Shown here: positions 6,027 through 56,945 of the stretch, one piece after another
Numbering within the stretch: position 1 is the stretch's first letter
How the letters are laid out: each line of letters starts with the position of its first letter
DNA from: Cyanophora paradoxa CCMP329
Taxonomy: Eukaryota; Plantae; Glaucophyta
Direction: 5' to 3'
NCBI GenBank assembly: GCA_004431415.1
Contig: QPMI01000337.1
Location: 1-58,799, forward strand
Length of the DNA stretch: 58,799 nt
Notes under the pieces: generated by a model
Seen by the model: only the letters and a program-made list of their open reading frames with translations
Database searches by the model: none
Told to the model about the DNA's origin: nothing
Translations under genes and position numbers: made by a program

Positions 6027-6153
6027 CCCGCCCCGCGCACACACCAGCCAGCTAGCCCCACACAGGCTCGTGTATGCATGCCAGTAGACAGAAGGATCTA
6101 CGGGCGCCGCGCACGGGGCGGGGGCGGGGGCGGGGGCGTGCGGGGGCGGGGTC

Positions 6154-8030: not shown

Positions 8031-9422
8031 TCTGCAGAACGGTGACAGATCAGCGGCCAGGTCCGGCGGAGCGAGGAAGTTGCAGGCGGTGCGACAACGC
8101 ACAAGGCGTCGACCTGGCGTACGAAAGGTCAACGTACGTCGGAAAAGATAGCCGCTGAGCCATCGCAGCGGCGTACCTCGGTCATCGCTCAACGCGACGG
8201 CGTCGACTCGAAGGAGGCAGCCTGCAGGCCGGGTGCTTGCGACCAATATTCTGGCAGCGGCAGCGACCTGCCACCAGCAGCTTCGCCGCTCTCGTTCCGC
8301 CGCTGCCGAAATGCGGTGCGGCTGTCTGGCGAAGGGGGTACAAGCTGCGCAGGCGATGTTCAGCTCGATGGCGGCGCTGTCCTTGGGACGCCTAACATCC
8401 GGGACGATCATCGCCGAGACCCCGCGCCGCAGACGGGCAGCGGAGAAACCGCGGCGCACCTCCGCAGCACCGCGCGGCCTCTTCCCGCGAGGCCCTCCCG
8501 CCGTCAAGTTGAATTGTGCGCTCCTCATACGCGCTCCTCGTTTTGTCTCTCCGCGCGCCGAATGATAAGTTTTGCGCCTAGCTTGGAGTCCCGACCGGCA
8601 CAACCGGCTTGCGACGTCGACGTCGGATGACAGCGCGCTTCCGTTGAAGCCGCGTACGACGTCGGCGTCCCCCGCGAGGGACGAGAGCGACCGGCCGGTC
8701 TGGTCAGTTCCGCCAGGACCACCTCGTCGGCTTTTCCCCGCAGGACCACCCCACGGGCGCCGGCGACACATCTCCGATTCAGGTTCATGCGCGTCGACGC
8801 CTGCCAGGTCCCGCCAAGCTGACCGGCCGATGCTTGGCGCAGGCCCCGTGGGCGACCTGCACCCTTTCTCTGAGGCGGGCCACGAGTCCGCGAGAAGCTG
8901 CGAGGGAAACGAGGCAATGTTCGCGGAGATGCGCGCGCGTCGCCGCGTTGAGCGCCAGCTGCGGAGGCTCTTTTCCGCGAAGCCGCCGACGCCGGCCGCT
9001 GTCAAGCCTCCTGCACTTCAGTAGAGGCCGAGGCAGCGCGCTCTTTCTTTCCTGTATCACGGCTAACCGCTGTTGTATTTTACTTGTATTTCTGCGTCAG
9101 ATTGGTAGGCGCTCGTGGGTGTTGTGAATATTTATAGTTTGTTCTGAGCAGGTATTTCGTTCACGACTTAGATTGCGGTAGCTAGCGTCGTTTCCAAGCC
9201 TCAGTGCTAGATATCTAGTGTCTGAGCGTCGCAGTGTATACGTATCATATCTAGTGGTATCTAGTATCTGATCATGAACGTCTCGGCCAGGCCGCGTCGC
9301 CTCGGGCGCGCCCGCGCATGCCAGATCCGATGATCTATATCATCTAGACTCTGAGACTCGCACTAGTATATTATAATTGATTGCAATGGGCGCGGTGGAC
9401 TCAGGGCGTCGACCGACGGCCG

Positions 9423-9573
9423 GGCCGCGGCCGGGCGGATTTGTCTGCACTTAAGCTTCTTAAAAGCTTCTCCGTCGTGCCACGGCCGCGGTGGCGGCCG
9501 CGGCCGGGCGGATTTGTTTGCACTTAAGCTTCTTAAAAGCTTCTCCGTCGTACGCGTGCCACGGCCGCGGTGG
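9423..9573. repeat. intergenic tandem duplication, 73-bp period, 2 copies
   Basis: ggccgcggccgggcggatttgt(c/t)tgcacttaagcttcttaaaagcttctccgtcgt[acgcgt]gccacggccgcggtgg at 9423 and 9496. The copies differ by one substitution and a 6-nt indel. Confidence 0.95.
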
Positions 9574-9927
9574 ACGCGGGGAAGCTGCCCCCGTGAAGCC
9601 GCGGCCGGCGCCTCGTCGAGCTCCGCTCCCACGACATGCCATCGTAGTTGGGAAGTAGTAGGAACCCATGGCCAGGGGGATCGCGCCCCCTTCGGAGCCC
9701 GGAGGGCCCTGCTGCGTTGTCCGCAGCTTCTCGCCTTATAGGTAGGACCGCCGCAGCGAGCTCTTGCGTAGCCCGCAGCTAGCCCGCCCGTTCAATCAAT
9801 GTGCAAGCAACGCTCAGACCCCTAGAGCAGCGCACAACAGATGTGTGTAGCAATCCATCAAGCAATCGCAACTTGGCTACAGGCAAAACTGCGGCCGGCT
9901 GGCCGCATCGTGACGAGCAAGAAAAAC

Positions 9928-11223: not shown

Positions 11224-14200
11224 ATGACGCTGCGCGTGAAGCTTTACCAGCTGAACGGCGAAGGCCAGTGGGACGACAAGGGCACTGGCCACGTCTCGTG
11301 CTCCTATGTCCAGGTTCGGACCGCGATATGCGCCCCGCGGGCACCCCTGGGCCGTCCCGACGCGCGGGCAGACGGGCCCATCGGCCGACTTGGTCCCCGC
11401 CGACCTGGTCCCGCAGAAATTCGACTCGTTTACGATGACTGTGGTGTCAGAGGAGGACGGCGGCGTGCTTCTCGAGGTCAAAATCGCCGCAGACGTAAGC
11501 TACCAGCGGCAAGGCGGTTCGCGTCCCGACCCCATTCTAGAGCCGCTCGCCGACTGGAGGGCGTGCGGCGGCTAAGAGTTTGCTTGCGCCGAGGCGCATC
11601 TCTGATTCGTTCGTGCGCGCTCCGTTTCCGAATGGCCGCAGACACGATCGTCTCATGGACGTGCCCCGACACCGGGATAGACATGGCGCTCAGCTTTCAG
11701 GAGGTTTCTGGTTGCGCGGAAGTATGGTGCGGAGTCGAAAACGGGCTGCTCTTCATGCGCCAGCTCACATGGAGGTGTTCCTCTCGGCAGGGATCAAATA
11801 TGCACTGCGCAGGGGCGATACAACGGAGTAGCAGGTGCGTTTACGATGCGCTTTCCTTTCTTTGACTGTCGCGGCCTCCCCCGGGATGCCGATTCCTTTT
11901 CGCGCCCGGCAGGCGCCGACGCGGAGATGATTAGCGGGCCCACGCAGGAGGAGGGTCCGCATTCGTCATTTCTTACGCAGGGATGCGCTCGGCTTGCTTT
12001 CAAACCCTCACTTTTGGCCGCCCCTGCCTCGCTTTCGCAGCAACGGGAGTCCAGCTGCCGGACGTTGACTTGAACAACCTGAACGCGATCCTGGAGATCT
12101 TTACGGAGGTCCCGCCCTTCAAAAGGGACAAACTAGCAGCAGCGATTGCGAAACAGGTGCGAGCTTCAGCACTCTTCGTGCGTTTCCCGCTTCGGACCGA
12201 CCCTTTTGTTCTATCCACATCGTGCCGAGCAGCAAGACTACATCAGCAAGCTCATCGATTTGTTCCACATATGTGAAGATCTGGAGAGCATCGAGTCGCT
12301 GCACACGCTGTTCAAGATCTTCCGCGGGATCGGTGCGGCCATGCCGAGCCCAGGCGCCGCGGCGCTCTGAGGGGTTGCCCGCAGTGCTCCTGAACGACAC
12401 GGCGATCTTCGAGCTGCTGCTTTCGGATCAGTACCTCCAGGACTTCGTCGGCGCCCTCGAGTGTATGCCCCCCTCCCGCCCCGGGCCGGCCGGCCGGCGG
12501 CGGGGGCGCTTAGGGCGGGGCGCGCAGACGACCCGGACGTGCAGAAGGACTTCACGCACCACCGGGACTTCCTCCGCAAGAACGCCAACTTCAAGGAGGT
12601 GCCGGCGCTCCGCGGGGGCCGGCGGCCCCCGGGGTCCCGCCCTGACGGCGCCGCGCAGGTCGTGCCGATCTCGAACGAGCAGATCCGGGGGAAGATCCAC
12701 CAGAACTTCCGGCTCTCGTACCTGAAGGACGTCATCCTGCCGCGGGCCCTGGACGACGCGACCTTCGCGACGGTCAACTCGATGCTCTTCTTCAACAACG
12801 TCGAGATCATCACGCACCTCCACTCCGACGAGGCCTTCCTCAAGGAGCTGTGCGCCCGCCCCGCCCCGCCCCGCCGCGCGCCCCGCCCGGGCGGCGAGCC
12901 GGTGCGCAGCTTCAGGCGGCTGCAGGAGGAGGCGGAGCAGGGGAAGTTCAAGGACCTGGTGCTCTTCCTGCAGGAGATGTGCAACCTCGCCAAGAACCTC
13001 CAGGTCCAGAACCGCGCCGCCTTCTACCGGTGCCCCCCGCCCCAACGCCCCCCCCCCCCCCCCCCCCCTCCCCCCCCCCTCCCCCCCCCGCCGCCGCCTT
13101 GCCTGACCCCGCGGCAGCTCCCTTTGCCAGCAGGGCTTCTACGACATCTTCCAGAAGGTCCTGAGCAACGGCGAGCCCTCCATTCGCCTCGCCGGGTGCG
13201 CGCCCCGCCCCGCCCCTCCCCGTCCCCCGCCGCGGGGCGCTGAACGCGGCGTCGCAGGACGGAGATCTTGAACTGCAGCGTGCAGCACGACGCGAGCCTG
13301 CTGCGGGCGTTTCTGATGCAGCAGCGGGCGGAGAAGTACCCGCTCTTCCACATCCTGATCAACGGGCTGATCCACGACGGGGACACGGGGATCAAGGCGC
13401 AGCTGGCGGACATCCTGCGCGCCCTCATCGACCCCGAGACCCTCGACGCCGTGCGCCCGCCCCGCCCCCCGTCCCGCCCCGCGCGCGCCGGCGGCCGGCT
13501 CAGGGGGCGCAGACGCCGGAGAAGGACACGTTCCTCAACCTCTTCTACGACGAGTTCATCGAGAAGCTCGTCTCCCCGCTCGCCGCCGACCCCGAGCCCA
13601 CCGACGGTGCCCCGCCCGCCCCGCACCGCCTCCGGCCCCTCCCGCCCCCCGAGCCGGCCGGCGCAGACCCCGAGGTCGCCGAGGGGCGCAACGTGGCGCG
13701 CAACCACATCTGCGACGTCCTCTCCTTCTGCGTGCAGGTCCCCTCCCCCCGTCCCCGGCTTCTCGCGTCGCGCGCCGACGGGCCGGGGCGCGCGCAGCAC
13801 CACGGGTACCGGATCAAGTACTTCATCCTGCGGAACAACATGGTGACGAAGGTCCTCAAGCTCCTCCGCCACCGCGAGAAGTACCTCATCCTCGGTCCGC
13901 CCCGCCCCGCCCCGCCCCGGTTCGGGGCGCCGTGGCGAGGCGGGGGGCGGGCGCAGTGGCGGTGCGGTTCTTCCGGGCGTGCATTGGGATCAAGGACGAG
14001 TTCTACAACCGCTACATCATCAAGAACAACCTCTTCCAGAACATCATGGACGTCTTCCAGGTGCCCCGCCCCGCCCCGCCCCGCCCCCCGCGCCGCATCG
14101 CGGCGGGGGCCGAGGGCGGGGGCGGGGCAGGCGAACGGGGCGCGGTACAACCTGATCAACTCGGCGATCATCGAGCTCTTCGACTTCATCCGGAAGGAGA

Positions 14201-14605
14201 ACATCAAGAGCCTCGTCTCGCACGTCGTGGAGTCCTTCAAGCCCCTCCTCGAGCGCGTCGACTACGTCGACACCTTCAAGATGCTCATCCTCAAGTACGA
14301 CCAGAACAAGGACCTCCTCGAGCAGACCTCCCGCTCCCGCCAGGCCCCCGCCGAGCACGCCCCGGGGCCCTCCGAGCCCCCGGGCCGCGCCCCCGGCGGG
14401 CGGCAGCGGCCGATGCTGTACGGGCCGCCGCGGCCGGTGATGACGGCGGACGAGGACGACGCTTACTTCAACGAGAGCGACGAGGAGGAGGACGGGGCGC
14501 CCCTCATCGGGCCCATGCCCCCGTCCGCCCTCGCCGCCGCCGGGGGCCCCCAGCGGCCCCGCGCACCCCTCTCCCTTGCCAACTCGGGCCCCAGCGGGCG
14601 GGGCC

Positions 14606-14645
<40 letters not shown>

Positions 14646-15400
14646 CGGGGCGCGGGACGAACGGCGACCTCGCTGGTGGACTACGAGGACGACGACGAGG
14701 AGGAGGACGAGGAGGCGCGCAGCAAGCGGCCCGCCATCCGCGCCGCCGCCGCCGCCGCCGGCCCGGGCGCCGCCCCCCTCTCCCCTTCCCTCGTCCCCTC
14801 CGCACCCCCGGCTCCCCGTCCCTGGCGGCCGCCAGGCCGCCGCCCCCGCATCGGCCCCGTCCCCGGCGCCGAGCACCAGCAGCAGCCGACGGCTCACACA
14901 CAGGGCGCCGCAACAGCGGGCGGCGAGGCGCGGGAGGGCCCGCCGCCCTCCTCGGCGGCCGGCGCGTCCACGGTGAACGGGGCGCTGCGGACGCCGGAGG
15001 GCGCGGCGGCCGGCCCGGCGGAGGCCGGCGGCGGGGCGCGGCGAGCGGGCCGGCGGAGGCGGCGGGGAGCAGGGGTCCGACCTCACCGAGCGCGGCGAAG
15101 AGGAAAGAGGAGGGGAGCGGGGCAGAGGACGGGGGCGGGGGCGGGGGCAAGGCTGGCGGGGCGGGCGGCGGCGCCTCGGGGGCGTCGGGCTCGGCGGGGG
15201 CGGCGGGGGCCGGGATGGGGATGGTGGTGGACCTCGGCCCCGGCGGCTCGGGCCTCCTCGACGCCCTCACGGGCCTCGGCGGCATCCTCGGCGACCCCTC
15301 CTCCGCCCCCGCAGGGCCCCCCGGCGAGAGCCCCCTCGGCAAGCGCCGCCGCGTCGAGGAGGCCGACGCAGCGCAGCCCCCCGAGCAGGAGGCCTCCTAG
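11224..15400 (+). CDS. PPP4R3: protein phosphatase 4 regulatory subunit 3 (SMEK/PSY2)
   Basis: EVH1-like N-terminus [45 protein letters not shown]-1 region [57 protein letters not shown]. Low-complexity tail ends at TAG 15400. Confidence 0.95.
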
Positions 15401-16934: not shown

Positions 16935-17400
16935 TATTCTTACGTATACGTATTCCGGCATTACTGCAAATTGTCTTCGCTTCAATTTCGAGATCTTCTA
17001 GCTATATATCTGCTATATGATGTGCTACATGTGCACGTGCAGCTGTACAGCATTCGAATTCTTCAATGTGACGTAGTAAGTAGATAGCTATAGCTTAGTA
17101 AATTGGAGCCCAGGTCGTCGACATCGATGTCACAGTACTAGTGTGCATGTACAGACAATTGCAATGAATATTCATTCAACGTCTCATGATCCGATGATCA
17201 TGAGGCCTACACTACTGTACGATAGCGCTAGCCGCTGAGCCGCTGAGCTAGCTATAGCCGCTGAGCGCTAGCCGCGGGCCCGCGGCGCATGCATATGCCA
17301 TGATGGCATATGCATATGCATGCCGGCCGCGGGGCGCCGGGCGCGGCGCACGCGCGCCGCGCGCGGATCCGGAGCTCGGAGCTCCAGGACGCGCGCGCCT
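16935..17400. repeat. intergenic tract of nested short palindromes
   Basis: Perfect palindromes tacgtatacgta (16941-52), gacatcgatgtc (17120-31), aatgaatattcatt (17163-76) and gccgcgggcccgcggc (17271-86), plus a 13-bp-arm inverted repeat atgcatatgccat-g-atggcatatgcat (17289-17315). Confidence 0.85.
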
Positions 17401-22125: not shown

Positions 22126-25100
22126 CTAGTAGGGCTTGCCGCGCCCGGAGGCGGCGACGATGGAGGCGGTCTCGGCGGTGAAGGCGCCGTTGGCGGCGAG
22201 CTCGTCCACGTCGAGGTGCAGCCGCCAGCGCCAGTAGTGCTCCGCGTTCGCCGGCACGTTGATCTGCCCCCGCGTTGGGAGGCGCCCGGGGGCGGGGCGG
22301 GGCGGGGCGGGGCGGGGCGGGGCGGGCCTGCTCGTCGCGGGGGTTGGGCCAGCAGAGCTCCTTGCGGAGGGCGACCAGGTCCTGCCGGCCCCGTGAGGCC
22401 CTGCCGGGGCGGGGCGGCGGCGCGCGCGGCGCGGGCGGGGCGGGCCTGGATGGGGAAGACGGCGAGGACGGAGGGGGAGCGGAGGTGCTGCTCCACGATG
22501 GCCTTGGCGATGTGCGGCTCGCAGGCCTGCGGGGCCCCGCCCTGCATCCCCAGCATCCCGTTGTAGAACTTCTGCGTCTTCCCGCGGTCCTCCTCCCACC
22601 AGCCCCTGCCCGCCCCTCGTCTCACCTTCGAGCGGGGCGGGGCGGGGCGGCTGGGGGCGGACCGGACGGTGGACATGTCGTGGCAGGAGGGGGTGCAGAC
22701 GGTGAGGTAGGGGTAGGCGGCGGGGTCGCCGAAGTCGACCTTGTCCTCCGCCGGCATGCGCTGGATGCGGAGGCCCAGGATGGCGAGCCGCTCCAGCACG
22801 CCCGCCACGCACTCCGGCACCATCCCCAGGTCCTCCCCGCACACCAGCATGTCCGACGCGTCCTTCATCATCGGCAGCTTCTCCATCGCCTTGCCCGCCC
22901 ACAGCCCGTCCTGCCGCTCGTAGAAGTAGCTGCCGCGCCGCCGCCGTCAGCGGCGCCGCGGGGCGGGGCGGGGCGGGGCGGGGCGGGGCCGGGGGCGCGC
23001 TTGACGTAGAGGTTATAGAGCTCGCGCTTCCAGTCGGCAGAGGGGAGCTCGTTGTACGAGGAGGTGTTGTGCATGAGGATGCGCGGGTGGTACGCGTCGG
23101 CCTCCTCGTCGTCCCGCCGCAGCACCACGTTGTCCATCAGCTCGAACAGCCCGTTCCGCGTCTGCCCCGCACCGTCACCCCGCGCCCCCGGCTGCGCGCC
23201 CGGGGGCCGGGTCCCTCACCCGCTCGGCGGCAGTGCGCTGCCACTCGGGGGCGTCCGCCGGCACCCGGAGCGCCGCCTGGCGGCCCGCCGCGTCGGGGCG
23301 GGGTAGGGAGCCGGGGCAGGGAGGGGGCCGGCGCGCCTCGATCTTGCGCTCGGTGTCGAACTGGGGCCGGAAGCGGAAGGCGTGCGGGCGCGGCTCGCAC
23401 GGCTCAAAGTACTGCCCCGCCCGGCCCCGGTCGGCGGCGCGAGGGCGGCGGGGGGCGGGGCGGGCGGGGCGGGCGGACGGTGTCGAGGATGCGCTGCGCC
23501 TCGGGCTGGGGGAAGATGCGCTCCACGAGGTGCCGCCGCACGTACGGCTCTGCGCAGCCCGTCACACGCCGCCCGCCCCGCGCGCGCGCTGCGGCCGGCG
23601 GCGCGCCTGTGAGGCGGTTGATGTCCCAGATGCCGAACTTGTCGAGCTCCGCCTTGCGGATGGGGATGGCGGGGCGGAAGCGGCCTGGCGGGGGTGAGGG
23701 GCGGCGGGGCGGGCGGGGTCGTGCGGACCGAGGAGGCCGGTGACGCAGTAGTCGGGGATCTCCCAGATGCGGAAGAAGCCGAGGATGTGGTCGATGCGGT
23801 AGGCGTGGAAGTACTTGGCCATGTGCCGCAGCCGCATCCGCCACCACGCGTACCCGTCCTTCCCCATCTCCTCCCAGTTGTACGTCGGGAAGCCCCAGTT
23901 CTGGCCCATCACCGCTGCGCCCCGCTCGCGGAGCGCAGGACGGGGCGGGGCGGGGCGGGGCGCGAACCGAAGAAGTCGGGCGGGGCCCCGGTCTGCGTGT
24001 TCATGCGGAAGAGGCTCCGGGCGATCCAGGTGTCCGCGCTGCGCCCCGTCAGGCGCGAGGCAGGGGCGGGGGGCGGGGGGCGGGGGCGGGGGGCGGCGCG
24101 CCAGGCCTTGTTGACGCCGATGGGGAGGTCGCCCTTGACGGCGACGTGCTTCGAGACGGCGTACCTGGCCCCGCCCCGGCCCGCTGAGGGGCGCCGGGGA
24201 GCCGGCTGGGCGGCGGGGGGCGCACTGGGTGGCCTCGAGGAGCTGGCGGTGGGCGTGGAACTGGACGAAGCAGTGGAGGGTCACAGCGTCAAAGTGGGGC
24301 GAGCCCGGCGCCGCGAACGCCTCCATCTCCGCCTGCGCGCCCCTCTCCGCGCGCGCAGCGGGGCGGGGGGAGGCGGGGCGGGGGCGGACGCGGGACATGT
24401 GGGCGCGCTTGCCCCAGCGGGAGAAATCGGCCGAGTCGGTGAGGTCGCGGAAGAAGCAGAAGACGGCGTAGGGGAGGAGCCAGTCGGCGTTCTCCGCGTA
24501 GAAGGCCCGGTACTCGGGCGAGGCGAGGAAGGCGGACTTGTGGGCGAGGTAGAGCTCGCGCAGCACGCGCCGCTTCAGCTTCATCACCCCCTCGAAGTCC
24601 ACCGCCGGCAGCGCGTTCAGCCGCTTCTGCTCCTCCTCCACCTCCCGCCCCAGGCCCGCCGGCATGCCCCCGACCGCCGCCAGGTTCACGTACCCCGGGT
24701 GCAGCGCGATCACCGACACCGAACTGCGCCCCGCTCGCCCCGCGGCGCGGCGGTGCGGCGGGCCGGGACGGGGCGGGGGCGCGCCTGTAGGGGTACGAGT
24801 CGCGCCAGGTCCCTGTGACGGTGGTGTCGTTGACGGGGAGGAGCTGGGCGGGGCGTCAGGGCGAGGGGCGGCGGGGGCGCGTGGCGGGGGCGGGGAGGGC
24901 GGGGCGGGGCGGGCCTGGATGAGCTGGATGCTGCACTTGGCGCAGAGGTCGACGAGGGGCTTGAGGTCCAGGAACTCCCCGATGCCCCCGCTCCGCCCCG
25001 TCCGCAGCGAGAAGACCGGCACCGCCACCCCGGCCCCGCGCCACGCCCCCTCGTACTGCCCTCGCCCCCGTCGCCCGGCGCCGGCGGGGGCGGAGGAGCG

Positions 25101-26392
25101 GCGCGGGCGGGGCGCGGGGGCGCACGCGGAAGTTCTCCTCGTGGAAGAGGGTGATGCTGGCGGGGAGGCCCTTGGCGCCCTGCGCGCCCGCCCCCGCCTC
25201 CTCCACCCTGCCGCCCCACCGCTCGGCGGGGCCCGCGCGGGGCGAAGCGGGGAGGGGCGGGGCGGGCACAGGTCGAGGGCGTCGAGGGGGAGGATGCGGT
25301 TGTCGCCGGCCTCCCACGCCGGCTCCGAGCGGTCCGCCCGCGCCGCCACGAACTTGTACCTGCCGCCCGCCCCGCCCCGTCCCGCCTCACCCCCAGCAAA
25401 GAAGAGAAAAGGAGGGAAAAGGAAGGGGCGGACGAGAGGGGCAGGTCCTCGCGGGCGACGAGGAGGTCGACGCTCCAGAGGGGGAACGCCTCGCCGCTCA
25501 TCGGCACCGCCTTCTTCACGTCCCACCCGCCCAGCGCCGCCGGCGCCCCGCACACGAACACCGTGTCCTCCGGGCCCACCCGCGGCGCGTACAGCTGCAA
25601 CCGCACCCACAGCCGCCCCTTCGAGCCGGCCGCCGTGATCGCTGCGGGCGGGCGGCTCGCGCGGGGGCTAGCGGCAGGCAGGGAAAGGAGGGCAGACCGA
25701 CGGGCTCGGACGGGGCGGGGGCGCTCTTCTTCGCGCGGCCGAAGATGACGTCGCGGAAGGCGGAGGTCATGAAGATGGTCTCGGGGTCCGAGCCCTTCTG
25801 CTCGCCCCGCTCGGCCCGCGCGCGGGGCCCGGAGCGGCGCGCCGCGCACCCGCCAAGAGTCCTTGAGCTCGACCGCGGTGAGGCTCTTGACGACGTCGGC
25901 GGCGAGCTTAAGGGTGCGGTAGCCGCCGCCCTCCACCTCCACGGAGCCGTCGCCGCTCTTGAGCACGTAGCGGTACTTGAAGCCCTCGATGAGCGCCGAC
26001 GCCGGCAGCGCCATCGTCGCCCGCCACTTCGCCCACGGCGCATAGGTCAACGCCGCGCCGGGCGCGCCGTCCTTTGCAGCGAGCTGCGGGATGGAACCCT
26101 CCACGAAAAGGACCTGGCCAAACTGCGCGAAGAGAATGAGACGAGCTGAAGGGTCGCGCGCAGGCCTGAGCCGGCGGCTATCCCAACTGCCGTGCACGAC
26201 TGCGCGCGCCCGGCCACCCTGCGCGGCCGGAGGGTCGAAGGTGGCGAATTCGAGACGCACCTGAGTGTCATAGCTGGTCTTGAATGTCACCCTCACGCTG
26301 CCTGCGAGTCGGGCGCACGAGCGGTCAGCGCGCAAAGACAGTTCGGCAGGAAAAGCGCCGCTACAGTATGCAGGCGCACCTGCGACGGCCAT
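22126..26392 (-). CDS. DPE2: 4-alpha-glucanotransferase DPE2 (two CBM20 domains + GH77)
   Basis: CBM20 motifs DTQFGQVLFVEGSIPQL and VFVCGAPAALGGWD..YKFV..WEAGDNR. GH77 motifs WRGAGVAVPVFSLRT, GIGEFLDLK, KGDLPIGV, GAPPDFF, GQNWGFPTYNW, AYRIDHILGFFRIWEIP, LVCGEDLGMVP, PSCHDMST, INVPA..YWRWRLH. No transit peptide. Confidence 0.96.
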
Positions 26393-26488: not shown

Positions 26489-29400
26489 ATGTCGGTCTTC
26501 GACGCGCAGGTCCGTATTCTTGCGCATGGAGCACATGCGCACCTCACGCGCGTGCCCTCCAGGAGCTGGCCGTCGGGTGGTCGGGCCCCATCTCGGCGGC
26601 CGACACCTGGGCCGCGAACCTCGTTGCCGGCACAACCGACGGGCAGCTCCTGTTGCTTGCGCGGCTCAGCGGATCAGATGGTGCGGCGCCCGCTCCGCTC
26701 GGGTTCGCGGCGTCACCGCGCGCTCGCAGGCGCCCCCAGCTCGCTGCGGGTCATGGACAGGCGGGACGGCCCCAAGAGACCGGTCGAGCAAATCTCTGTT
26801 GTCGAGCGCCTCTTCGCAGTCCTCGCGCTCTCCGGTGCGCCGTTCGCTCGGCGCGCCCGCGGCGCTGACGGCCGTGGCCAGACTCCGTCGTCTCCGTCCA
26901 CGATCTGTCGAGCCTGAAGCACGTGCGAGATCAGTTCGGCAAAGGCACTGTGGCGTACGCGCTGTACACGCCGCGGCCCGGGGAGCAGCACCCCATCCAG
27001 GTCTGCTGCGCCATCAAGCGCTCGCTGCACCTCTACTCGTGGAACGCCGAGAGGAAGAAGTTCGACGTCGAGAAGGCACGCGCGCCTCCGGAACGGCGCG
27101 GGCGGGCACGGGCCTGAGGGGCGCGCAGCGGCTGGAAAACGCGCTGGCGGACTCGCCGCGGGCGCTCCGCTTCCTGGGCCCTTCGCTGCTGCTGGCGACC
27201 TTCCGGAGGGACTTCGCGGCCGTCAACGTTGCCACGGGGGCCGTGTACGAGATCACGCTCCCCGCCGCCCCGCCGGGGGCCCCCGCGGAGGGCGGCGGCG
27301 GCATCCTCGCCTCGGCGGCCGGCTACGTGAGCGCAGCGTACGCGGGGGCACCCCTCGCGGCGGCCGCCGCGCCGGTGTCCCCCGACGAGGTCCTCCTCGC
27401 GCGCGACGGTGAGGGCCCCCCCGACCCGCCCTCGAGGCCGCTGACGCCGAGCCGCGGGGCAGGCGTGGGACACTTCGTGGGCCCGACGGGGCTCCCCACG
27501 GGGCGCCCGCCGCTCTCGTGGCCCCAGCAGCCGGCGCACGTCGCCGTCTGCCCGCCCTTCGTCCTCGCCCTCCTCCCCGCCGCCGCCTCCCCCGCCGCCT
27601 CCCCCGGCTCCTCCCTCGGCGCCGGCTCCTACCGCGGCCCCTCGCCGGCCGCCGGGGGCCCCGCCGCGGTGCTGCACGTGCACCTGCTGCTCCCGGCGAT
27701 GCAGCGGGCGCCCGTGCTGATCCAGGTGGCGCCGGCCCCGGGGCGCGGCTGCTGGCGGCGCGGGCGCTGGCGGCGGTATACGCGCTCGGGGAGCGGGGGC
27801 GGTGCTGCTGGCGCCGCTGGGGCGGTGGAGCAGGCGCTGGGGCTGGCGGGGGCGGGCGCCTGGAGGAGGCCCTCGCCCTCGCCGACCTCGAGGAGGACGA
27901 CGCCGCCCGCGACGCCGCCTCCCGCGCACGCCACCCGCCGCCCCGCCCCGCCCCGCCCGCACCCCCTCACCCCGCCCCGCGCGCAGCACCTGCGACGGCA
28001 GTACGCGCGGCAGCTGCTCGAGCGGCGCGATTTCGAGGGCGGCCTTGCCCAGCTCCGCGCCGCCCGCGCCCCGCTCGCCGAGGCCCGCCCGCCCCCTGCC
28101 CCGTGCCCCGCCCGTGCCTCACCCCGCGCAGGTCCTTGGCATCTTCCGGCGCCTGCTGCCCGTCTCCTCTGAGCTGGCGGAGAAGCTGCGCGGCCCGCGC
28201 GCGGAGCCGGCTCCGCACGCAGCCTTTCCCACGGCGGGTGGCGTGCCGGACGCGCCCCTCCCTGTCCTCGGTGCGCGCGCCGGCAGGCCGGTGGTGCAAG
28301 CGCGGCGAGCATGCCTGAGGCGGGGGCAGAGGGGGACGTGGAGGGGGCGGGCGTGGAGGCGCTGGGGGCCCTGGTGGACGACCTGCTGCAGCGCCGGGCG
28401 GAGCTCACCGGCGCCGCGCGGACGGGCGAGGCCGGCCCGGCGCTGGGGGCGGGGGAGGCGGAGGCGGGGCGGCGCGGGGTGGACACGGCGCTGCTGGAGG
28501 CGTACGTGCGGTGCCGGGAGGCGCTCGTGGGGCCCTTCCTCGACGCCCGCCCCGCCGTCGCCTTCCCCGACGCCGCCGCCGTCCTCTCCGCCGCCCGCGT
28601 CCGCCACCCCCGCCCCGCCTGCGCCCTCTCTTCCCCCGGCGACACCGGCCGGCGCAGAAATACCGCGAGCTCGGCCGCCTGCACGCCGCGCACGGCGCCC
28701 ACAGCGACGCCCTCGCCCTCTTCAAGCGGTCCGTCATCCCCGCGGCGACTGCCACCCCACCCGCCGACGCCCCGCAGGCTGGCCGACGAGGGGTACCGGG
28801 AAGAGGGGGCGGGGGCGGGCGGGGCGCCGTTCGGGGCGCAAGCGGCGGTGGAGTACCTAGTGGAGCTGCGGCGGCGGCGCCCGGGGCTGCCCGAGGCGGA
28901 GGCGGGGGCGGCGGAGGCGGCGGAGGAGGCGGGGGCGGCGTGGCTGCTGCGGGAGCACCCGGAGGCCGGCCTCGCGCTCCTCACGGACCCGTCGGCGCGG
29001 TACGGGGCCCCGGTGGGGCGGAGGAGGCGGCAGCGGGGCGGGCGCTGGCGCTGGTGCGGGCGCACGCCCCGCGCCTCGCCCTCCGCCTCCTCGAGCACCT
29101 CGTCTCCGAGCGGCGCGTCCCCTCCCCGGCCCTCCACACCGCCCTCGCCGCCGCCCTCCTCCGCCGCGCCCTCCCCGCCCCCCCGGCCCCGGCCCCCGCC
29201 CCCGCCCCCGTTCCCGCCCCGTCTCCGGCCTCCACTTCCGCCCAGCCGGCCACGTCCAAGAAGGGCAAGAAAGGAAAGCAGCAGCAGCAGGCGCAGCAGC
29301 AGGCGCAGCAGCCGCCGCCACCGGCGGAGGCGGCGGCGACGGTGCCGGCTGCGGAGGCGGGGCCGGCGGCGGAGGGCCTCTTGGAGGTAGAGGTGGAGGG

Positions 29401-30343
29401 GGCGGCGAGCGAGGAGGAAGCGCGGGAGAGCGCGGGGCGGCTGGTGCGGCTGCTGGAGGCGTCGGCGCACTGCGAGGCGGGGCCGCTGCTCGCGCTGCTG
29501 GAGGCGCGGGGCGGGGCGGGGCGCTGCCGGAGGCGCGGGCGCTGCTGCTGGGGCGGCTGGGGCGGCTGCGGGAGGCGTTCGCGCTGCAGGTGCACGCGCT
29601 GGGGCCCCCGCCCTGGCGGAGCGCTTCTGCGAGCGGCGCTACGCGGAGAGCCCCGCCGCCGGCGCCGACGCCTACGCCGCCCTCCTCGAGGCCCGCCCCC
29701 CCGCCCCCCCGCCCTCCCGTCGCAGCTCGTGAGGCCTTCCCCGCAGGTGTGCGTGCGGCCCGGGGAGGGGCGGGAGGCGAACGCCGCGCTGGCGCTGGAG
29801 CTGCTGGAGCGGCACGCGACGCGCTTCGAGCCGGCGGCGGTGCTGGCGGCGCTCCCCGAGGAGCTCCCCGTCGGGCCCGTCGTCGCCGGCTTCGTGCAGC
29901 GCGTCGTCCGCGGCAGCACCGCCGCCTACCGCTCCGCCCTCCTCCTCAAGTCCCTCCTCCACGTCCAGAGCGCCCAGGCCCGCCCCGCCCCGCCCCGCCC
30001 CGCCCCGCCCCCGGCCAGCGTGCGCCGCCCGGGCGAGCCGGCGCCGGGGCGCAGGTCGAGGTGGAGCTCGGCGACCTCAAGCGCGCCTGCGTCACCGTCG
30101 TGCGCCCCGCCCGCCTCCGCTTTCCCCTCGCGCCCCCTCAGGCCTCACGTGCCCCCCCGCGCCCCGCAGGAGCCGCACCGGACGTGCCCCGTCTGCGGCA
30201 AGCGGATCGGGACGGCGGTCTTCGCGCTCTACCCCAACCGCTCCACCCTCGTGCACTACTCGTGCTGCCGCGACCGCAGCGTCGACCCCGTCACTGGCCA
30301 CAACTACGGCGGGGCTAGCGCTGCCGGCGCGCACGGCGCGTAG
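26489..30343 (+). CDS. Vps39 / TGFBRAP1 (Vps3)-family tethering subunit
   Basis: N-terminal CNH-like propeller (RPVEQISVVERL, VCCAIKRSLHLYSW, EVLLARD.VGHFVGPTG), helical repeats (VDTALLEAY, KYRELGRLHAAHGAHSDALAL) and a C-terminal zinc finger CPVCGKRIGTAVFALYPN..VHYSC. Some apparent frameshifts in G/C runs. Confidence 0.85.
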
Positions 30344-30563: not shown

Positions 30564-30673
30564 ATGCGCATCGACCAGATCACAAACCGCGATGACCAGA
30601 TCCAGCCTCCAACGCCCTCTCCGCAGCCCAACCATGGCACAAGTCTGAGCATTCGCCCGAGCCACAACAGTCC

Positions 30674-35122: not shown

Positions 35123-38420
<3,298 letters not shown>

Positions 38421-40808: not shown

Positions 40809-43800
40809 ATGTCGGGCCATGCGGACCCCGGCGGGACCTCCTACAGAAGCATCCGGCCGCCTCCGGAGAGGTCTCGCATCCACGTGGGCGGCGGCTCCTC
40901 GTTGTTCAATGCCGACGCGAAGAAGCTCATGCAGTCGAGCTCCACTTCGTCGCTGGCGATTGATGGCGCAGGCCCTTCCACGCCTTCTGATCGGGCATCA
41001 AACAGCGCCAGGTCCGGGCACCCCAATGTCCCGCACGCTGCACGTACGCTGAGGTTTGCTTTCGCAGCGCCGAGGAGCCAGCGCGAGTAGAATGCCGTCT
41101 AGCTCAGAGCCTCGTATCTATCGTACTCGATCCCCGGGTGCGCTGCTTCGCTGCCTCCGGGTGCCCGCGCCGACCGCCCCGTGCAGGCGCCCCCGCCTCC
41201 GCCCGTACAGTTCAACCCACCGAATCTAGCATCTTTCCCGGGTTCCGATATCACGCGGTTCTCCTTTGACCGGTATCTGGAGCTGCTCAGCCAGGTTCGC
41301 CGTCTTTTGGCGGTCTGAAAACCGCGTTCTCGCTGAGCGGCGCGGCGCGCAGAAGCAGCTATGGTGGTCGCACACGGGACAGAAGAAAGTCGGTGCGTCG
41401 GACTCGTCCACGAAGCCCGACGCGCAAAGTGGTGCGCCCCGCGTCGCGGTGACGCCGAGGATGCCGATGCGTGGCTCACACTCGTGCTGCAGCTGCGGAA
41501 GGGGTCGCAGAGTGCATGAGGGTCGTTCCGGACGTGCGCCGCTCCTCGAATGATCACTTTTTTCGCTTCTCACATCCCGGCCGCAGTTGTACTTCAGGGA
41601 GTCCTTGCACTTGGAAGAACCGTTCACGTTCAACGCCGCATTCCCGATGCGAGAGAGCTTCAGCGAACTCGACGAGAAGGTCTGCGCCCAGGACGAATGA
41701 TGCCGCTGGCGCTCACAAGCCCTGCTCGATCAGCTCCAGCGATGGCTCGACTGCGTGGAGGTGCAGCTGATCAAGCAGGTCTCCGCGCGGTCGGATTCCT
41801 TTTTCTCCGCGCTCGAGAACCTGCAAGAGCTGCACGTGGAGGTCGGCGACGTCGTGAAAGAGATCTCCACGCTCCGGTGCCGGCTGCAGTCCTCTTGCCC
41901 CTCCCGACGCGCGGCCGACGCGCGCGCGCAGGAGGAAGATGCGGCAGCTGGACGAGTCGGCGGTCGTCAGCTCACTGAAGGTGTTCAAGCTCAGGCGGCA
42001 GCGGCAGCACGCCGCGAACCTCTACACGAAGGCGCGCCGGGCCGCCCCGAGCGGGGCGACGGCCGCTGACGCGCGCGCAGCTGAAGCTGATCAAGACGGT
42101 GAGGCAGACGCAGCCGACGATCCAGCTGCTGTTGAGCACGAGCGACTACGCGGGGGCCCTCGACCTCATCTCCTCCACCCAGAGCGTCCTCCGCACGCAG
42201 CTCGCCGGCATCCAGGCCTTCCGGTGCCCCCGCGCCCCCTTCCATCGATTTCCTCCGCGCACCACGGGGGGGCTGAGCGGGCAGCAGGCACCTGTCGCAC
42301 GAGCTGGCGGAGAAGGTGGTCCTCATCGAGAAGATGATGTCCGCCGAGTTCGTCCAGCTCGCCGTCGACTCCATCCGCCGCTCCCAGGCGCGCCCCGCCC
42401 CCGCCCCGTCCCCCGCCCCTCCGACCCCCGGGGCAGGAGCCGGCGGGGTCGGCGGTGAAGAAGAGCGCCTCGAACTACGCGCTCGCGGACGGCATGAAGC
42501 GCTCCCCCTCCAACTACGCCGTCGCCGACCCCGTGCGCCGCCCCGCCCCGCCGCCGCCCGCCCGCCCCGCCGACGCCGCGCCAGGACGGGGACGCGAACG
42601 AGCGGATGATCCCGCTGCTGCTGGGCCTCACGCGCAGCGGCCGGCTGGGCGGCGCGCTGCAGGCCCTCCGGGAGCGGCTGGGCCATGAGGTGAAGGCGGC
42701 GATGAAGCAGGCGATGGTGGCGGCGTGCCCGCGCCTCGCCCCGGGCTTCGGCCCCGGGGACGAGGCGGGGGCGCTGGAGCGGGACCCCGCGCTGGGCCCC
42801 GACGGGAGCGTGGCGGGGGAGGCGGGGGCGCTGGGTGCGCTGCTGGCGGAGCTGGGGCACGAGGCGTTCATGGGGTGCATGGCGGGGACGTACGCGTCGC
42901 TGCTGGCGCTGTTGCGCCGCTGCGCCGCCATCCGCGACCTCGTCGCCTCCCTCCTCCAGGCCCTCGCCCCCGACGACCCCTTCGCCCCGCCCCTGCCCCC
43001 GTCCCCCGCCTCCGGCCCCGCCCCCTCCCCGCCCCCCTCCGCACCCTCGCCCCGCGGCCCCGCCTCCGCCACCCCGTCCCCCGCCCCCGGCGCCGGCCCC
43101 TCCTCCAGCCCTGGCCCCGCTCGCCCCCCCTCCCCGAGCCGGCAAGCCCGGCCCCCTGTCTCCGAGCCGCGCCGCCTCTGACGCCCCGCGCAGGCCTCCG
43201 CCACCGCGCGTTTCTCCCCTCGCTCCGCTCCGCCCCGTCCCCTCCCCTCTGGCCGGCCCCTCGGCGCTGGCGCACGGCGCGCCGTCGCCGTCCCCCGCGT
43301 GGCCGCCGCCGGCCCCGCGGGCCTTCGCTCCGATCGGGGCGCCGCCGTCCCCGGCGGGCCAGGCGGCGGCCACGCGGGAGGCGCAGCTGGCGGCGGAGGC
43401 AGCGGAGGCGGTGCAGGCGCTGTGCGAGGCGGTGCACCAGCGCTGCGCGCGCGTGCTGGCGCTGCGGGCGGCGGCGCACGCGCGCCTCTCCTACCCCGAC
43501 TTCCTGGCCCTCTACGAGGCCACGCGGGCCTTCGTGTTCGCCTCCGAGGAGATCTCCCGCCGCAAGTGCGTCACCCTCCGCGGCGCCCTCCTCGCCCAGG
43601 TGCCCCGCCCGCCCCGCCCGCCCCGCCTCCTCCGGCCCGTGGCGCCGACGCGGGGGTGCGGGGCAGGCGAAGGCGTTCCTGCAGGGGATGCACGCGGGAC
43701 GGCTGGCGACGCTGCAGGTGCTGCTGGAGAACGAGAGCTGGGCGCAGGCCGACGTCCCCTCGGAGTTCCAGGAGCTCCTCGACGGCGTCCTCCGCCTCGC

Positions 43801-48025: not shown

Positions 48026-49806
48026 ATGGCGGATCCCAAGGCACGCGGTGCCGCAATCCGCTCGCTGGAGGTCCGCTATCTCAGTCTCTCGCGCGGAGTA
48101 GGGCCGGCTTGGCCGCTGTGCACCTGTAGGCGTACTCATTGTGCTGTATCGCGCAGAGCGATACCAGCCCCTTCGTCATGATGGAGGACATCCTAGAAAA
48201 GCTGAAGCTGCTGGATTACGAAAAGCACTTCTGCCACATGAAGTGCGGAAGCAGATCAAGCTATTCTTGTGCACCACTAACGATGTCTGGCCTTCGCCGC
48301 CGCAGGAACTTCAAACCACTGACGCGGCAGTTCTTCGCACTCCCTCAGTCCAATCCAGCAGAGCAGTTCTACACATTTGCGTCCCTAGTATCATGGCTGA
48401 TGGCCAAGAACCAGCACTTCTTCCCAGCGCCAGGCCAGTTCGACGACCCTAACTCCACAGCTACCAACATACGTGCGCCCCCCCGAGCTGCGCACACACC
48501 CCGTCTGACAGGCAACACGTGCGCCTGTCACAGTGCAAGAGCTAAAGAAGATGGGCTTCGCGACGGACTTCGCGCCGGCGAAGCTAAAAGCTGCGCACGG
48601 GGAGGCAGTCTGCGGAGTGCTCAACAACCTGCTGGATCAGACGCTCGAGAGCGAAGGATTCGCGTTCAGGAAACCTATCTACCCACAGGAAGCGTGCGCG
48701 GCGTGGCTGGTCGGGCGAGCGGGAGGGCGTGGGCGTGACGGGGGCGGTGTGGCGGGGCGCGCAGGGCGGAGGAGGAGGCGGTGATGGACGAGGACGGGGA
48801 GGCGGACCTGGCGGAGATCGCGGACGAGGCGGCGGGCAGGCGGCCGCACGACGACGACAGCGAGGAGGAGTACATCAACCCCGTCGCCGCCAGCAAGGCC
48901 AAGGACGAGCGCGAGAAGTGCGCCCCCGCCCTCGCTCCCGCCCGTCTGGACGAGCGGTCGGGGCAGGGGCTGACGCATGGCGCAGGGCGGCGGTGCAGGG
49001 CCCCATCCAGACGGCGATCGACCCCGAGAAGTGGCGGCTCGAGCTGGAGCGGGTGGAGCCGCAGCTCAAGATCGTGCTGGCGTCGGACAACAAGGAGTGG
49101 CGCACGCACGTCGAGCAGACGCGGCTCCACCAGGGCATCGTCAACCAGGCGATGCCCGAGACGCGCTCCATGCTCGACCGGATCGGGAGCGACGTGCACG
49201 GCGCCCTCGAGAAGATCCAGACCCGCGAGAAGTACATCAACAACCAGCTCGACGGCAGGGCGCGCCCGCCCCGCCCCGCCCCACCCCGCACCCGCCCCCG
49301 AGCCCCGCCGCGCCTGACGCCGGGGGCAGATCGGGGACTATCGGGCGGTGCAGGAGCGGCTGAACGTGCTGACGTCGGAGTTCGAAGCGCTGCAGCAGAA
49401 CGTGAGCGGCCTCGCGGAGCAAAAGACCGCCCTCGACGAGGCCCTCGAGAAGATCCGGGTGCGCAGCTGCGCGGGGCGCGGGGCGGGGCGCGGGACAGCG
49501 CTGACGCCCCCGCAGCAAGACATGGACAACCGCAACGGGTCGATGACGGACACGGCGCCCGTCGTCAAGATCAAGGCCTCCCTCCAGAAGCTCAAGGCCC
49601 GCCCCCCCGCCCCTCGCGGCCCGCGCGCGCCGCTCACGGCGGCGCAGAACGAGAGCAAGCTGATGGAGATCCGGATCGGCGTGGTGGAGCAGACGCTGCT
49701 GCAGGCGCGGCTGAAGAACAAGATGGCGGCGGCGGTTGCGCCGAACCCCGCCAACGCCTCCATGGAGTTCGCCCGCGGCGCCGGCCTCGACCAGGAGGAC
49801 TACTAG
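48026..49806 (+). CDS. IFT57: intraflagellar transport protein 57
   Basis: MEDILEKLKLLDYE, NPAEQFYTFASLVSWL, QFDDPNSTATNI, PAKLKAAHGEAVC, WRLELERVEPQLK, KEWRTHVEQ, LEKIQTREKYINNQL, MTDTAPVVKIKASLQKLK and MEIRIGVVEQTLL. Confidence 0.96.
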
Positions 49807-54301: not shown

Positions 54302-56945
54302 CTAGGCGACGGAGGGTGTGCCGAGGGCGAGGGGCAGGGGCCGGGCGTCGGGGCCGGAGTAGAAGAGGAGGGCGGTGGCGTCGCGGGCGGCGGGGCCGGG
54401 GGCCGGCCGCTCGAGGGCGAGGGCCTCGGCGACGACGAGCGCCGCGTCGCCGGCCGCGTGCGCCGCCAGCGCCCGGCACGAGAGCTCCGCCAGCGCGCCC
54501 CGGCCCCCGCAGCCGCACCCGGAAGGCGGCCCCGGGGGCGGCGCAGGCGGGGCGGCGGGGAGGCGGCGGGAGGGCGAAGGAGAGGAGGGGCGGGTCGAGG
54601 GAGAGGAGGGTGAAGGCGTCGGCGAGGGCCGGCGGGGCCGCCTCGGGGGCCCCCCGGCGGGGAGGAGCTCGGCGTGCGGCCGCGGCACGCGCGCCGCGAG
54701 GTCGGCGACGGAGAGGGGCCCACGGGGAGGGGCGCCGGCGGGCCCTCGAGGGGCGTCGGGGCGCGGCAGGCGCGGGCGTGCCAGAGGGCGGGAAGGGGCG
54801 GCGGGGTCGGCGGGGCGGCGCTCGGCGGAGAGGACGCGGGCGAGGACGAGGGCGTGGTCGCCGCCCGGCAGCAGCCGCTCGACGCGGCAGACGAGCGTGG
54901 CGAAGGGGCCGCGCAGCAGCGGCGCCCCCGTCTCGGCGTCCGTCTCGTGCTGGAGGCCCTCGAACTGGCGCCCCGCGGGGCCGGCGAAGCGGGCGGCGAG
55001 GGGCCCCTGGTCGGGGGCGAGGAAGTGGAGGGCGAGGGGGAGGGGCTCGGGGCGCGGCTCGGAGAGGAGGGCGTGCATGGCGGAGCCGCGGGCGACGTTG
55101 AAGGAGGCGAGGGGCGCCTCCCCCGCGTGCACCGCCACGCTGTTCGCCGTGATCGCGTGCGGCCCCGCCCCGCCCGCCCCGGGCGCCGTGATCACCGCCA
55201 CCGGCAGCGGCACGGAGCGCATGAGCTCGCGCAGCTGGTCCCCGCGCACGCCGGCCGGGGGCGCGGGCGGGGCGGCCGGCGGCTCGGCGATCGCCTGGAG
55301 GACGGCCGGCGAGGAGCGCGAGTAGAGGACGTAGCCGAAGACGCGCTCGGGCATCTGCCCGCGCAGCTGGGGGCCGGCAGCGGGGTGAGGGGCGGGGCGG
55401 GGCGGGGCGGGGCGGGGGGGCGGCACCCGCTCGAGGAAGTCGCGGGCGGCGGTGTCGGAGTCGAAGGTCATGGCGGCGGTGGCGAGGGCGTCCGCGAGGG
55501 CGCAGGAGGAGGCGAGCACGGTGGCCGAGGCGACCGAGGTGGCGGTCGCCTTCATCGCCGCCCCGCGGCGCGGGTCGAAGACGTGGTAGTAGCCGAACTT
55601 GTAGAGCTGCTGGTAGTCCCCCGAGGTCGCCGCCGCCCGCCCCCGCAGCGCCACGTCCGCCAGCATCCGCCGCTCCCCGGGCGCCACCCCGGCCCCCTTC
55701 CACCGGTCGAAGAGCGCCTCCAGCGGGGGCGGGCAGAGGACGGCCGTGCGCCAGTCGCGCCCGGCGGGGTGGCGCCCGGCGGCGCGCATGTCGCCGGCCC
55801 AGTCGACGAGGGCGTCCTCGAAGCCGGCGGCGCCGAGGCGCTCGACGAGCATGTCCACCGCCAGGCCCTTGGCGACGGCCCCGAGGTCGAGGGAGACCCC
55901 GGGGGCAGCCTTCGTCGCCACCCCCTCCTCCGACACCGCCAGCTTCGCCATCCCCACGAGCCCCGCCGCCGTCGCCGCCTCCTCCGGCGTCGGCTTCACG
56001 CCCCGCTCGAGCTTCTCCAGCCAGGCGCGCCGCAGGGGCCCGACGGTCGGGTCGAAGCGGCCGCCCGTGAGCTTGTGGAGCTCGCGGCAGAGGGCGAGGA
56101 GCTGCTGGAGGGGGCGGGAGAGCTGGAGGGGGGCCTTGCCGGCGGCGGCGTTGAGGCGGGAGGCCTCGGAGGCGGGGTTCCACGTGTTGAAAGTGGCGTC
56201 CACCTCGGAGAAGACCTCCTCGACGAGCCGCTCCAGCGCCGGGCGCGCCGCCTCCCCGGCCGCCACCATCACCTTGTACTCCAGCGTCATCGCCCGCCCC
56301 CGCAGCACCACCAGCCGCGGGTCCCCCGCCCCCTCCGTGAACTCGTCCCCGGGGATCATCGCCGGCAGCGCCGCCGCCGCCCCCGCCGCTGCCGCGCGCG
56401 TCGGCCCCCGCCGGCGCCGGGGCGCGGGCGCGGGCGGCGCACGCTTGGGCTTGGGCTTGAGGGAGCCGAAGTAGTCGTCCACCGAGGGGCGCGCCCCGCC
56501 CCCGGCCCCCGCGAACGACGCCATCGACTGCCCGCCGTCAGCATCCCCCCGCCCCGCCGGCGGCGCGCCGCACGCGACGCACCATCGAGTCCATCGGCCG
56601 CTGCTTCTGCGCCGCCGCGGCGGCTGGCGCTGCCGCCGGCTTCGGCACCGGGGGCGCCGCGGATGCGAAGGGCCTCCCCGCGCCATAGGCCGTCCCGTTC
56701 TGCGCGCCGTTCGACGTGCCGCCAGACACGCCGTTCGCCGCCGTTGGCTTAACAGAGCCGTTCGCCGCCGCCGCCGCCGCCGCCGCTGCCGGGCGCGCGG
56801 GAGAGCTGCTGGAGGCCACGGGCAGAGACTGCATCACGCCGTTGCTGTCTGCCTTGGCGGCGTGCGGCGGACGTGTTCCGTGCGCGGGCGGAGTCGCGAG
56901 TTGAGCGCTTCCGGCGCTGGCTTCCTTGCTCACCTCGCAGCCCAT
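54302..56945 (-). CDS. fusion protein: MGC acylation signal + ApbE FAD:protein FMN transferase + two flavin-reductase-like split-barrel domains
   Basis: ApbE motifs GRAMTLEYKV, FNTWNPASEASRLN, TGGRFDPTVGPL, LDLGAVAKGLAVD, LVDWAGDMRAAG, ATSGDY, YHVFDPRRG and ADALATA. Flavin-reductase motifs LRELMRSVPLPVAVIT..ITANSV..LAARFA..GAPLL..LVCRV..GGDHALVLARV. Second degenerate copy AFTLLSLDPPLLSFAL..LSCR..AGDAALVVAE..LLFYSG. Confidence 0.88.

Follow-up and report, generated by a model that had tools for sequence, protein, structure and literature searches.

Does the place of a codon within its exon decide whether it ends in G or in C? This question is raised by a stretch of 58,799 nucleotides (nt) from the glaucophyte alga Cyanophora paradoxa CCMP329 (contig QPMI01000337.1 of assembly GCA_004431415.1, positions 1 to 58,799, 71.5% GC), the whole of which we call the window. 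An initial annotation had described, throughout the gene bodies of both strands, a periodic oscillation of C-rich and G-rich sequence, phased with introns and written into synonymous codons, with the SMEK gene as its example, and had ascribed it to a nucleosome- or methylation-linked code with introns sitting in linkers. We find that this oscillation (hereafter the wave) is a real and very strong compositional pattern, which apparently has not been described before: no description was found in the literature searched, where the coverage was thin for subscription papers. The reading as a nucleosome or methylation lattice is not supported.

Our 19 gene models come from a codon model that takes no account of position, and were curated by hand. 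Stretches with doubtful reading frame were masked before the statistics, which are based on 182 trusted introns (median length, 61 nt) and on 5293 third positions with G or C at four-fold sites. Many short introns are also reported for the C. paradoxa assembly (Price et al. 2019, PMC6704402). Pfam matches support SMEK, ApbE, DPE2, Sec23, IFT57, and Vps54. The remaining gene names (e.g. Vps39-like and MORC-like) are what we take the genes to be by recognition only.

The G-to-C wave in exons and introns

Among the internal exons of the window that lie more than 1 kb from the ATG, G occupies the four-fold third position (G3) in 400 of 506 cases (79%) in the first thirds of exons, and in 98 of 567 (17%) in the last thirds (p~1e-97). 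The direction from G to C is present in all 8 four-fold boxes, in genes of the plus and minus strands alike, and in 74 of 80 exons (sign test, 5e-16), and the position in the exon sets G versus C with an odds ratio of ~18. The earlier observation that exons begin with G-ending and end with C-ending codons is therefore borne out on both strands. The difference persists more than 30 nt from any splice site (G3 258/321 in first thirds versus 98/349 in last thirds), and also in externally confirmed models only (213/280 versus 40/270). Since the wave reaches 150–250 nt into exons and runs in intron-free and last exons as well, it is, as had been proposed, more than a splice signal. In addition, runs of exactly four C or four G are in excess, and the blocks are sharper than a smooth-field model predicts. 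No A/T-rich patches were found at the exonic switches.

The SMEK gene, whose identity is confirmed by Pfam, illustrates the pattern. Its features are as follows.

11224..15400, plus strand: SMEK/PP4R3 gene with 17 introns (Pfam PP4R3 on three exons, RNA-type contigs); the wave is absent in the first ~1 kb and strong from ~12400
Starts at 12463, 12599, 12850, 13030, 13196, 13451, 13607, 13738, and 13895, plus strand: nine SMEK body introns with C-rich 5' halves
14061-14130, plus strand: further SMEK body intron with a C-rich 5' half
13798..13894, plus strand: example exon with G-ending, then C-ending codons, read from the sequence
14131..14600, plus strand: part of the last exon that has no intron; a C-to-G switch lies within it near 14398

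Between 12400 and 14130, four-fold G3 amounts to 37/49 in first thirds and 9/58 in last thirds (p=3e-10). Contigs of RNA type, a status that we guess from the runs, join across the introns near 12463-12527, 12599-12658, 13451-13512, and 13738-13797; apart from these four joints, the boundaries come from contig pieces and the gene model. The switch near 14398 is unspliced, as one contiguous RNA-type contig piece spans 14140-14600.

The introns carry the opposite switch. Their 5' halves are C-rich (skew −0.40) and CCCCG occurs within the first 30 nt of 76 of the 102 body introns, as the initial annotation had it. Its further statement that introns end G-rich holds in part at most: the skew of the 3' halves is ~0 on average, and a mild G excess of +0.1 to +0.2 is confined to the last ~20 nt, with the C-to-G flip sitting ~20 nt before the acceptor. 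No pyrimidine tract was found before the acceptors in the gene bodies of the window. Overall, 62 of 78 C-to-G switches fall at introns, where intron windows make up 35% of gene bodies, and 87 of 88 G-to-C switches fall in exons, which indicates that introns organise the wave. The 16 exonic C-to-G switches include three in a 1101-nt ApbE exon. Last exons also go from G to C, and the 3' untranslated regions of most genes open C-rich with no downstream donor. Between converging genes, the same order is seen.

6027..6153, no strand: intron-like gap that separates converging genes, C-rich at first and G-rich after
45068-45293: second gap between converging genes with the same C-then-G pattern

The claim that the wave runs throughout gene bodies stands as regards the window as a whole and both strands, but has to be limited within genes. 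No wave is seen over the first ~400 nt from the ATG, and full strength is reached past ~1 kb. In short genes (Rab1, p25-like, and GCH1) the wave is weak or absent. IFT57 (48026..49806, plus strand, supported by Pfam) shows it beyond ~700 nt, including the last exon. As a separate observation, the MORC-like gene (30564-34827, plus strand) is long, yet its wave is much weaker than in the neighbouring genes and its GC is lower. Over the same span from the ATG, four-fold GC climbs from 0.80 to 0.98, the A+T of introns drops from 29% to 10%, and the share of GC-AG donors increases from 7.5% near the start to 33% beyond 1 kb (p=2e-5; e.g. 22126-25500 and 42388). Since selection for better splicing would not favour weak donors, the last change counts for a process at the DNA level. 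A drive by repair is expected to saturate sequence with G/C even against function, and in the bodies we do observe four-fold GC of 0.98 together with 33% GC-AG donors; this saturation is compatible with gene conversion, but is no proof of it.

Could the wave be an artefact of assembly, annotation or high GC? The window does have insertion or deletion errors (indels) in G/C runs. Apparent frameshifts in such runs occur at 14659-15033, 27738, 29016, 29519, 29602, 45613-46802, 53705, 54304-54655, and 58440; they are probably assembly indels, and the one at 14813 was confirmed by an independent DNA run and is also shown by the RNA-type contigs. The same run, on the other hand, shows no substitutions, and the effect holds in the externally confirmed models, as given above. 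High GC alone does not produce the pattern either: Sec23 genes of other eukaryotes with four-fold GC of 0.90–0.99 have an autocorrelation of ~0.0–0.17 versus 0.28 in C. paradoxa, in a comparison sample that leans to intron-poor genes and transcripts. An artefact is thus largely refuted, and we give it next to no credence. Formation of CpG or copying of the next base was also rejected as a driver, the wave being independent of both, and so was a purine/pyrimidine wave, since four-fold A and T do not follow.

Scaling with exon length instead of a fixed period

The initial annotation had called the wave periodic, and the spacing of SMEK donors that it gave (130–255 nt, mean about 180) is real, with a measured mean of 178 nt, but this mean belongs to a broad spread. 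The other genes and the long exons concerned are as follows.

22126..26392, minus strand: DPE2 gene with 22 introns; single G-to-C cycles in its 267- and 334-nt exons
35155..38420, minus strand: Sec23 gene with 13 introns; single cycles in its 268- and 303-nt exons
42585..43141, plus strand: 557-nt Vps54 exon with one G-to-C cycle (Vps54 by Pfam on another exon)
28778..29690, plus strand: 913-nt Vps39-like exon that holds two cycles, with ~550 nt as the best period (name by recognition; frames masked close to assembly indels)
55427..56527, minus strand: 1101-nt intron-free ApbE exon with a free-running wave, best period ~330 nt (Pfam across the exon; published model 100% identical)

The DPE2 model is identical to EukProt tig00001408_g8607 (942/942), and 808 residues of the Sec23 model are identical to the EukProt C. 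paradoxa protein, which places the window on tig00001408 of the assembly of Price et al. 2019. As an aside, in the published Sec23 model a 57-nt intron (35203-35259) is kept and gives an insert of 19 residues, and the start lies 22 codons downstream of ours.

Across 97 exons, the position of the G-to-C switch follows exon length with a slope of 0.57 (r=0.80), and it stays near mid-exon in exons of 40 to 420 nt. In exons of 200–420 nt, a 180-nt period is the worst fit and adds 0–12 log-likelihood units, while exon-scaled or two-end models add 101–113. The autocorrelation of long exons is negative at 170–230 nt. These exons mostly cycle at 260–550 nt, with best periods in single exons of ~330 and 260 (ApbE), 280 (SMEK), 370 and 690 (Vps54), and 550 nt (Vps39-like); one 463-nt exon, with a best period of 170 nt, is the exception. 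By segmentation, cycle lengths range continuously over 122–677 nt without clustering at multiples of 130–225. The mode of donor spacing is 120–140 nt without multiples, and 35% of adjacent introns are less than 147 nt apart. Fixed periods of 120–700 nt, whether donor- or acceptor-anchored, and quantised cycles were tried and rejected for 140–220 nt. No fixed period was found, and the spectra with introns removed have no consistent peak near 180 nt, an outcome that counts against the periodic reading on its own terms.

The wave had also been reported to continue inside two long intron-free stretches. This is true of the 1101-nt ApbE exon (56527-55427), where several cycles run with C-to-G switches near 56442, 56021, and 55733. 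It is not true of 42720-43140, which is one G-to-C cycle of the 557-nt exon pinned at both splice sites, with no free wave. Apart from this, the ApbE gene (54235-56945, minus strand) joins an ApbE flavin transferase to a flavin reductase domain, a fusion that is also found in Gloeochaete (55% identity) and other eukaryotes, and its second intron lies inside a C-block without a switch.

A nucleosome-length or methylation-linked code with introns in linkers, of the type of DNMT5 algae or of yeast signatures, therefore has to be weighed against these results. In its favour are the SMEK mean of 178 nt and the yeast nucleosomal signatures (Quintales et al. 2015, PMC4422121), which are strand-palindromic and shape codons and amino acids. 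Those signatures share with the wave a strand-asymmetric and reverse-complement-symmetric profile with an effect on codons and amino acids, although this symmetry is only approximate in the wave. They differ in that the yeast signature belongs to a 150-bp nucleosome, is strongest for A/T, and is an average over thousands of nucleosomes, while the Cyanophora wave is specific to G/C, is near-binary already in a single gene, and has cycles that lengthen with the exon (122–677 nt). As cycle length varies, a profile locked to the nucleosome dyad is argued against. Likewise, the scaling, the poor fit of the 180-nt period, the negative autocorrelation, the unquantised cycles, and the 35% of introns less than 147 nt apart speak against a lattice.

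The comparison with DNMT5 leads to the same result. Linker CG methylation by DNMT5 with nucleosome-periodic sequence is described for prasinophytes and haptophytes (Huff and Zilberman 2014, as cited in PMC12344493 and PMC12695648). Like that system, the wave occupies gene bodies but not their 5' ends, and the alga is GC-rich; unlike it, the wave has no fixed period and neither enrichment in nor dependence on CpG. CpG observed/expected is 1.03 in bodies and ~1.0–1.1 at the intronic switch, with no peak at switches. No CpG periodicity was seen, but the comparison loci showed none either, so the power of this test is not demonstrated. In addition, the C. paradoxa methylome is described as maintained by DNMT1/DNMT3 rather than DNMT5, and without classic gene-body methylation (PMC12344493). 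According to the same study, expressed C. paradoxa genes gain CG methylation toward their 3' ends, where the wave is strongest; the two overlap at gene scale, which favours a methylation link.

Such a signal does exist in algae. The same period test on 21 haptophyte-clade genes, many of them Sec23 orthologues and hence not fully independent, gave a weak pooled G3/C3 peak at 190 nt (p<0.004), so the method is able to detect a nucleosome-length signal. Haptophytes are a group reported to have linker methylation (PMC12344493, PMC12695648). At single loci of this clade (L021, L010, L081:9292-11571, and others), a weak G3-versus-C3 period of 180–190 nt is seen, and in L021 it is in phase between CpG-forming and other boxes. 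Overall, we consider a nucleosome- or methylation-linked code quite improbable as the cause of the Cyanophora wave, though a softer form, with introns as irregular nucleosome-poor sites, fits the explanation that we prefer.

Origin of the wave

Our preferred explanation, which we hold tentatively, is a non-adaptive, strand-polarised bias of G/C exchange in DNA repair, gene conversion or mutation. The DNA-level cause named by the initial annotation is thus also our best guess. Nothing follows, however, from its point that the C-to-G switch looks alike on the two strands, since reverse complementing any step from C to G gives C followed by G again. Actually, transcript polarity is present, in the exclusion of the 5' zone and in a donor field of −3.9 versus an acceptor field of +2.35.

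The bias would act in gene bodies past the promoter-proximal 0.4–1 kb, and would be organised around introns, gene ends, and occasional exonic sites. On the sense strand, C lies upstream of an organising site and G downstream, the G-to-C flip falls near the midpoint between two sites, and the wave appears together with a strong push from A/T to G/C. One process might give both pushes, most simply heteroduplex repair starting at nicks or breaks in introns and terminators. C:C is the poorest substrate of mismatch repair. If G:G mismatches were corrected and C:C escaped, the top strand would gain C on the left side of the break and G on its right side, so that the observed sign is predicted. Local self-reinforcement would also be needed for the sharp blocks and for the free waves in long exons.

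Known processes resemble this in part. In Arabidopsis, introns and terminators have elevated levels of meiotic breaks (PMC5880243), and strand-asymmetric C>G mutation occurs around human non-crossovers (PMC11922761). Like GC-biased conversion and break-linked mutation (PMC11922761, PMC5880243), the wave comes with an A/T-to-G/C push that weakens donors and moves amino acids, with a sign that flips across a centre, and with centres in introns and terminators. The known break-linked asymmetries, on the other hand, span kilobases and are small, and no G/C exchange bias at the 100-nt scale repeated per intron was found in the literature searched. If C>G mutagenesis of single strands, as near human non-crossovers, were the cause, the sign around its centre would be expected to be opposite, and the centres would have to lie at mid-exon.

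If a base were simply better or worse at a given position, the rare A3 and T3 of two-fold boxes should move along with the wave, and by an equal total of log-odds; every model of this kind makes that prediction. At 1 kb or more from the start, the combined ln ratio of two-fold A3/G3 and T3/C3 is +0.2 to −0.5 (±0.9 to 1.2, resting on ~20 A/T-ending codons), while selection on base identity predicts 2.6–4.0. We take this as moderate evidence for a G/C-specific process, though the signal could be blunted if the rare A/T bases are recent mutations. The fully developed wave touches mainly G/C exchanges. These also extend to the protein level: of 12 amino-acid pairs separated by a single G/C transversion, 11 follow the blocks (odds ratio 2.5 for E/D), and replacements relative to glaucophyte orthologues follow them with an odds ratio of 4.6 (p=0.03, n=41). 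Overall, the two-fold boxes, the amino acids, the weak folding signal described below, and the donors weakened to GC favour a G/C-specific, strand-polarised process at the DNA level that is coupled to the push toward G+C.

The main competitor is a code at the RNA level under selection, in which C-rich context marks donors and 3' ends and G-rich context marks acceptors. It would be read by poly(C)- or G-run-binding proteins, or by folding that keeps donors open, and would compensate for weak splice signals in introns of 88% GC. Such a code would agree with the anchoring of the wave at splice sites, its scaling with exon length, the stronger donor field, and its presence where splice signals are weakest. 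Predicted donor openness is 0.47 versus 0.42 in wave-destroying shuffles (p=1e-5) and lowest, 0.375, for an inverted wave, and pairing moves to long range across exon and intron midpoints. The gain in folding is nevertheless small (0.1–0.5 kcal/mol) and absent at acceptors and branch sites, and there is neither extra stability nor specific complementarity (z~0 against wave-preserving and wave-destroying shuffles). The candidate of specific hairpins spanning exons or introns was rejected on the same ground, as their arms lack both. In addition, the two-fold boxes show no response to the wave at 1 kb or more, full-strength waves run hundreds of nt from splice sites, and the exonic C-to-G switch of SMEK is unspliced.

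Exonic splicing enhancers give splice-site-proximal skews of synonymous codons. Anchoring at splice sites is common to these skews and the wave, while neutrality of exon cores is not: the wave forms near-binary blocks mid-exon in exons of 400–1100 nt. As with enhancer skews and with the intron-structured G+C gradients of plants (10.1101/010819), introns organise the synonymous composition of the adjoining exons; unlike both, the wave has opposite sign at the two exon ends, concerns G versus C instead of G+C or purines, has an odds ratio of ~18, and reaches mid-exon. We regard an RNA-level code as possible, but rather doubtful.

Transcription-coupled non-B DNA is a further candidate. Tandem CCCCG at the starts of introns would form G-quadruplexes (G4) on the template strand and G-blocks short R-loops, and these would pace RNA polymerase II or provoke skew-reinforcing repair, giving self-sustaining blocks. 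A template-strand G4 motif is present in 55 of 102 body introns versus 8 of 80 near 5' ends, and both the excess of runs of exactly four C or G and the blockiness above a smooth field would agree. G-run repeats by splice sites are also a likeness to the G4 motifs enriched near human splice junctions (PMC9065059). The human enrichment, however, is on the non-template strand, while the donor-side motif here is on the template strand and the skew runs through coding third positions. Codon-level skew in conserved exons also rarely yields G4 motifs. We think this candidate unlikely.

Another reading is that the wave is purely intron-derived and the exonic switches are footprints of lost introns. 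Several exonic C-to-G switches do lie in low-complexity linkers, and the gene finder called false introns at some of them. The ApbE switches at 56021 and 55733, on the contrary, are inside the conserved ApbE domain without an insert, and why introns create skew would stay unexplained. We judge loss of introns very improbable as the source.

Several points weigh against our preferred repair or conversion bias. In the two-fold test, position-defined classes from 600 nt give an intermediate value of 1.3–1.4±0.6 versus 2.3 predicted (bootstrap p=0.07); this value was traced to the 600–1000-nt transition zone, and a first version of the test gave z~5. The K/N pair goes the wrong way. One DNA run showed no substitutions relative to the window, the strain appears to be haploid (PMC6704402), and no report of sex was found in the same paper. 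Promoters are the strongest break sites in Arabidopsis, yet the 5' zone here is without the wave. The donor-side field exceeds the acceptor-side one, non-adjacent introns lack the additive effect that through-going tracts would give, and some blockiness is left over after the field model. Finally, the type of mismatch mattered little in a mouse annealing assay (PMC9001825).

Other organisms, remaining features, and meaning

The wave is not a glaucophyte-wide trait, as a Sec23 transcript of the sister group (L089, four-fold GC 0.48) is without it, nor is it present in Hyaloraphidium and Klebsormidium. Two Sec23 genes show other arrangements. In Klebsormidium (L087:10001-18237), the gradient is opposite and weaker, with G3 of 0.46 in first thirds and 0.67 in last thirds of exons. 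In a GC-rich eukaryote contig (L030:252-1560, four-fold GC 0.97), a weaker intron-free G/C wave of ~280 nt is seen in a 1.3-kb Sec23 exon. A contig labelled as human-skin metagenome (L055) was excluded from every comparison.

In the rest of the window, further genes are probable at 1762-4437 (minus strand), 20700-21990, and 38620-40310, for which no models were made; the first was excluded for several frame problems. The intergenic stretches 9240-9600, 17040-17400, and 18850-19150 contain many short self-complementary words, and by eye there is a tandem duplication of ~75 nt near 9415-9555. The whole window has 66 open reading frames of at least 250 amino acids, many of them antisense or out of frame. 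As third positions saturated with G/C lose antisense stops, the bidirectional reading frames puzzled over in PMC6704402 may be explained.

Four-fold G versus C is usually treated as neutral and position-independent. Here the position in the exon sets G versus C, and the amino acids follow, which is of relevance to gene prediction, codon design, and phylogenetics in a key archaeplastid genome. The analysis also separates the Cyanophora wave from the weak 190-nt signal of nucleosome type in haptophyte-clade genes. The wave is a direct test case between G/C-conserving exchange driven by repair or conversion and exon architecture written into codons. We suggest, with due caution, that introns may be the polar centres of an undescribed DNA process that exchanges G and C, with opposite directions on their two sides, or else that a whole-exon G-to-C ruler may be read in splicing. 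If the former is true, the process would be strong enough to dictate the majority of synonymous codons and to alter proteins throughout a eukaryotic genome.

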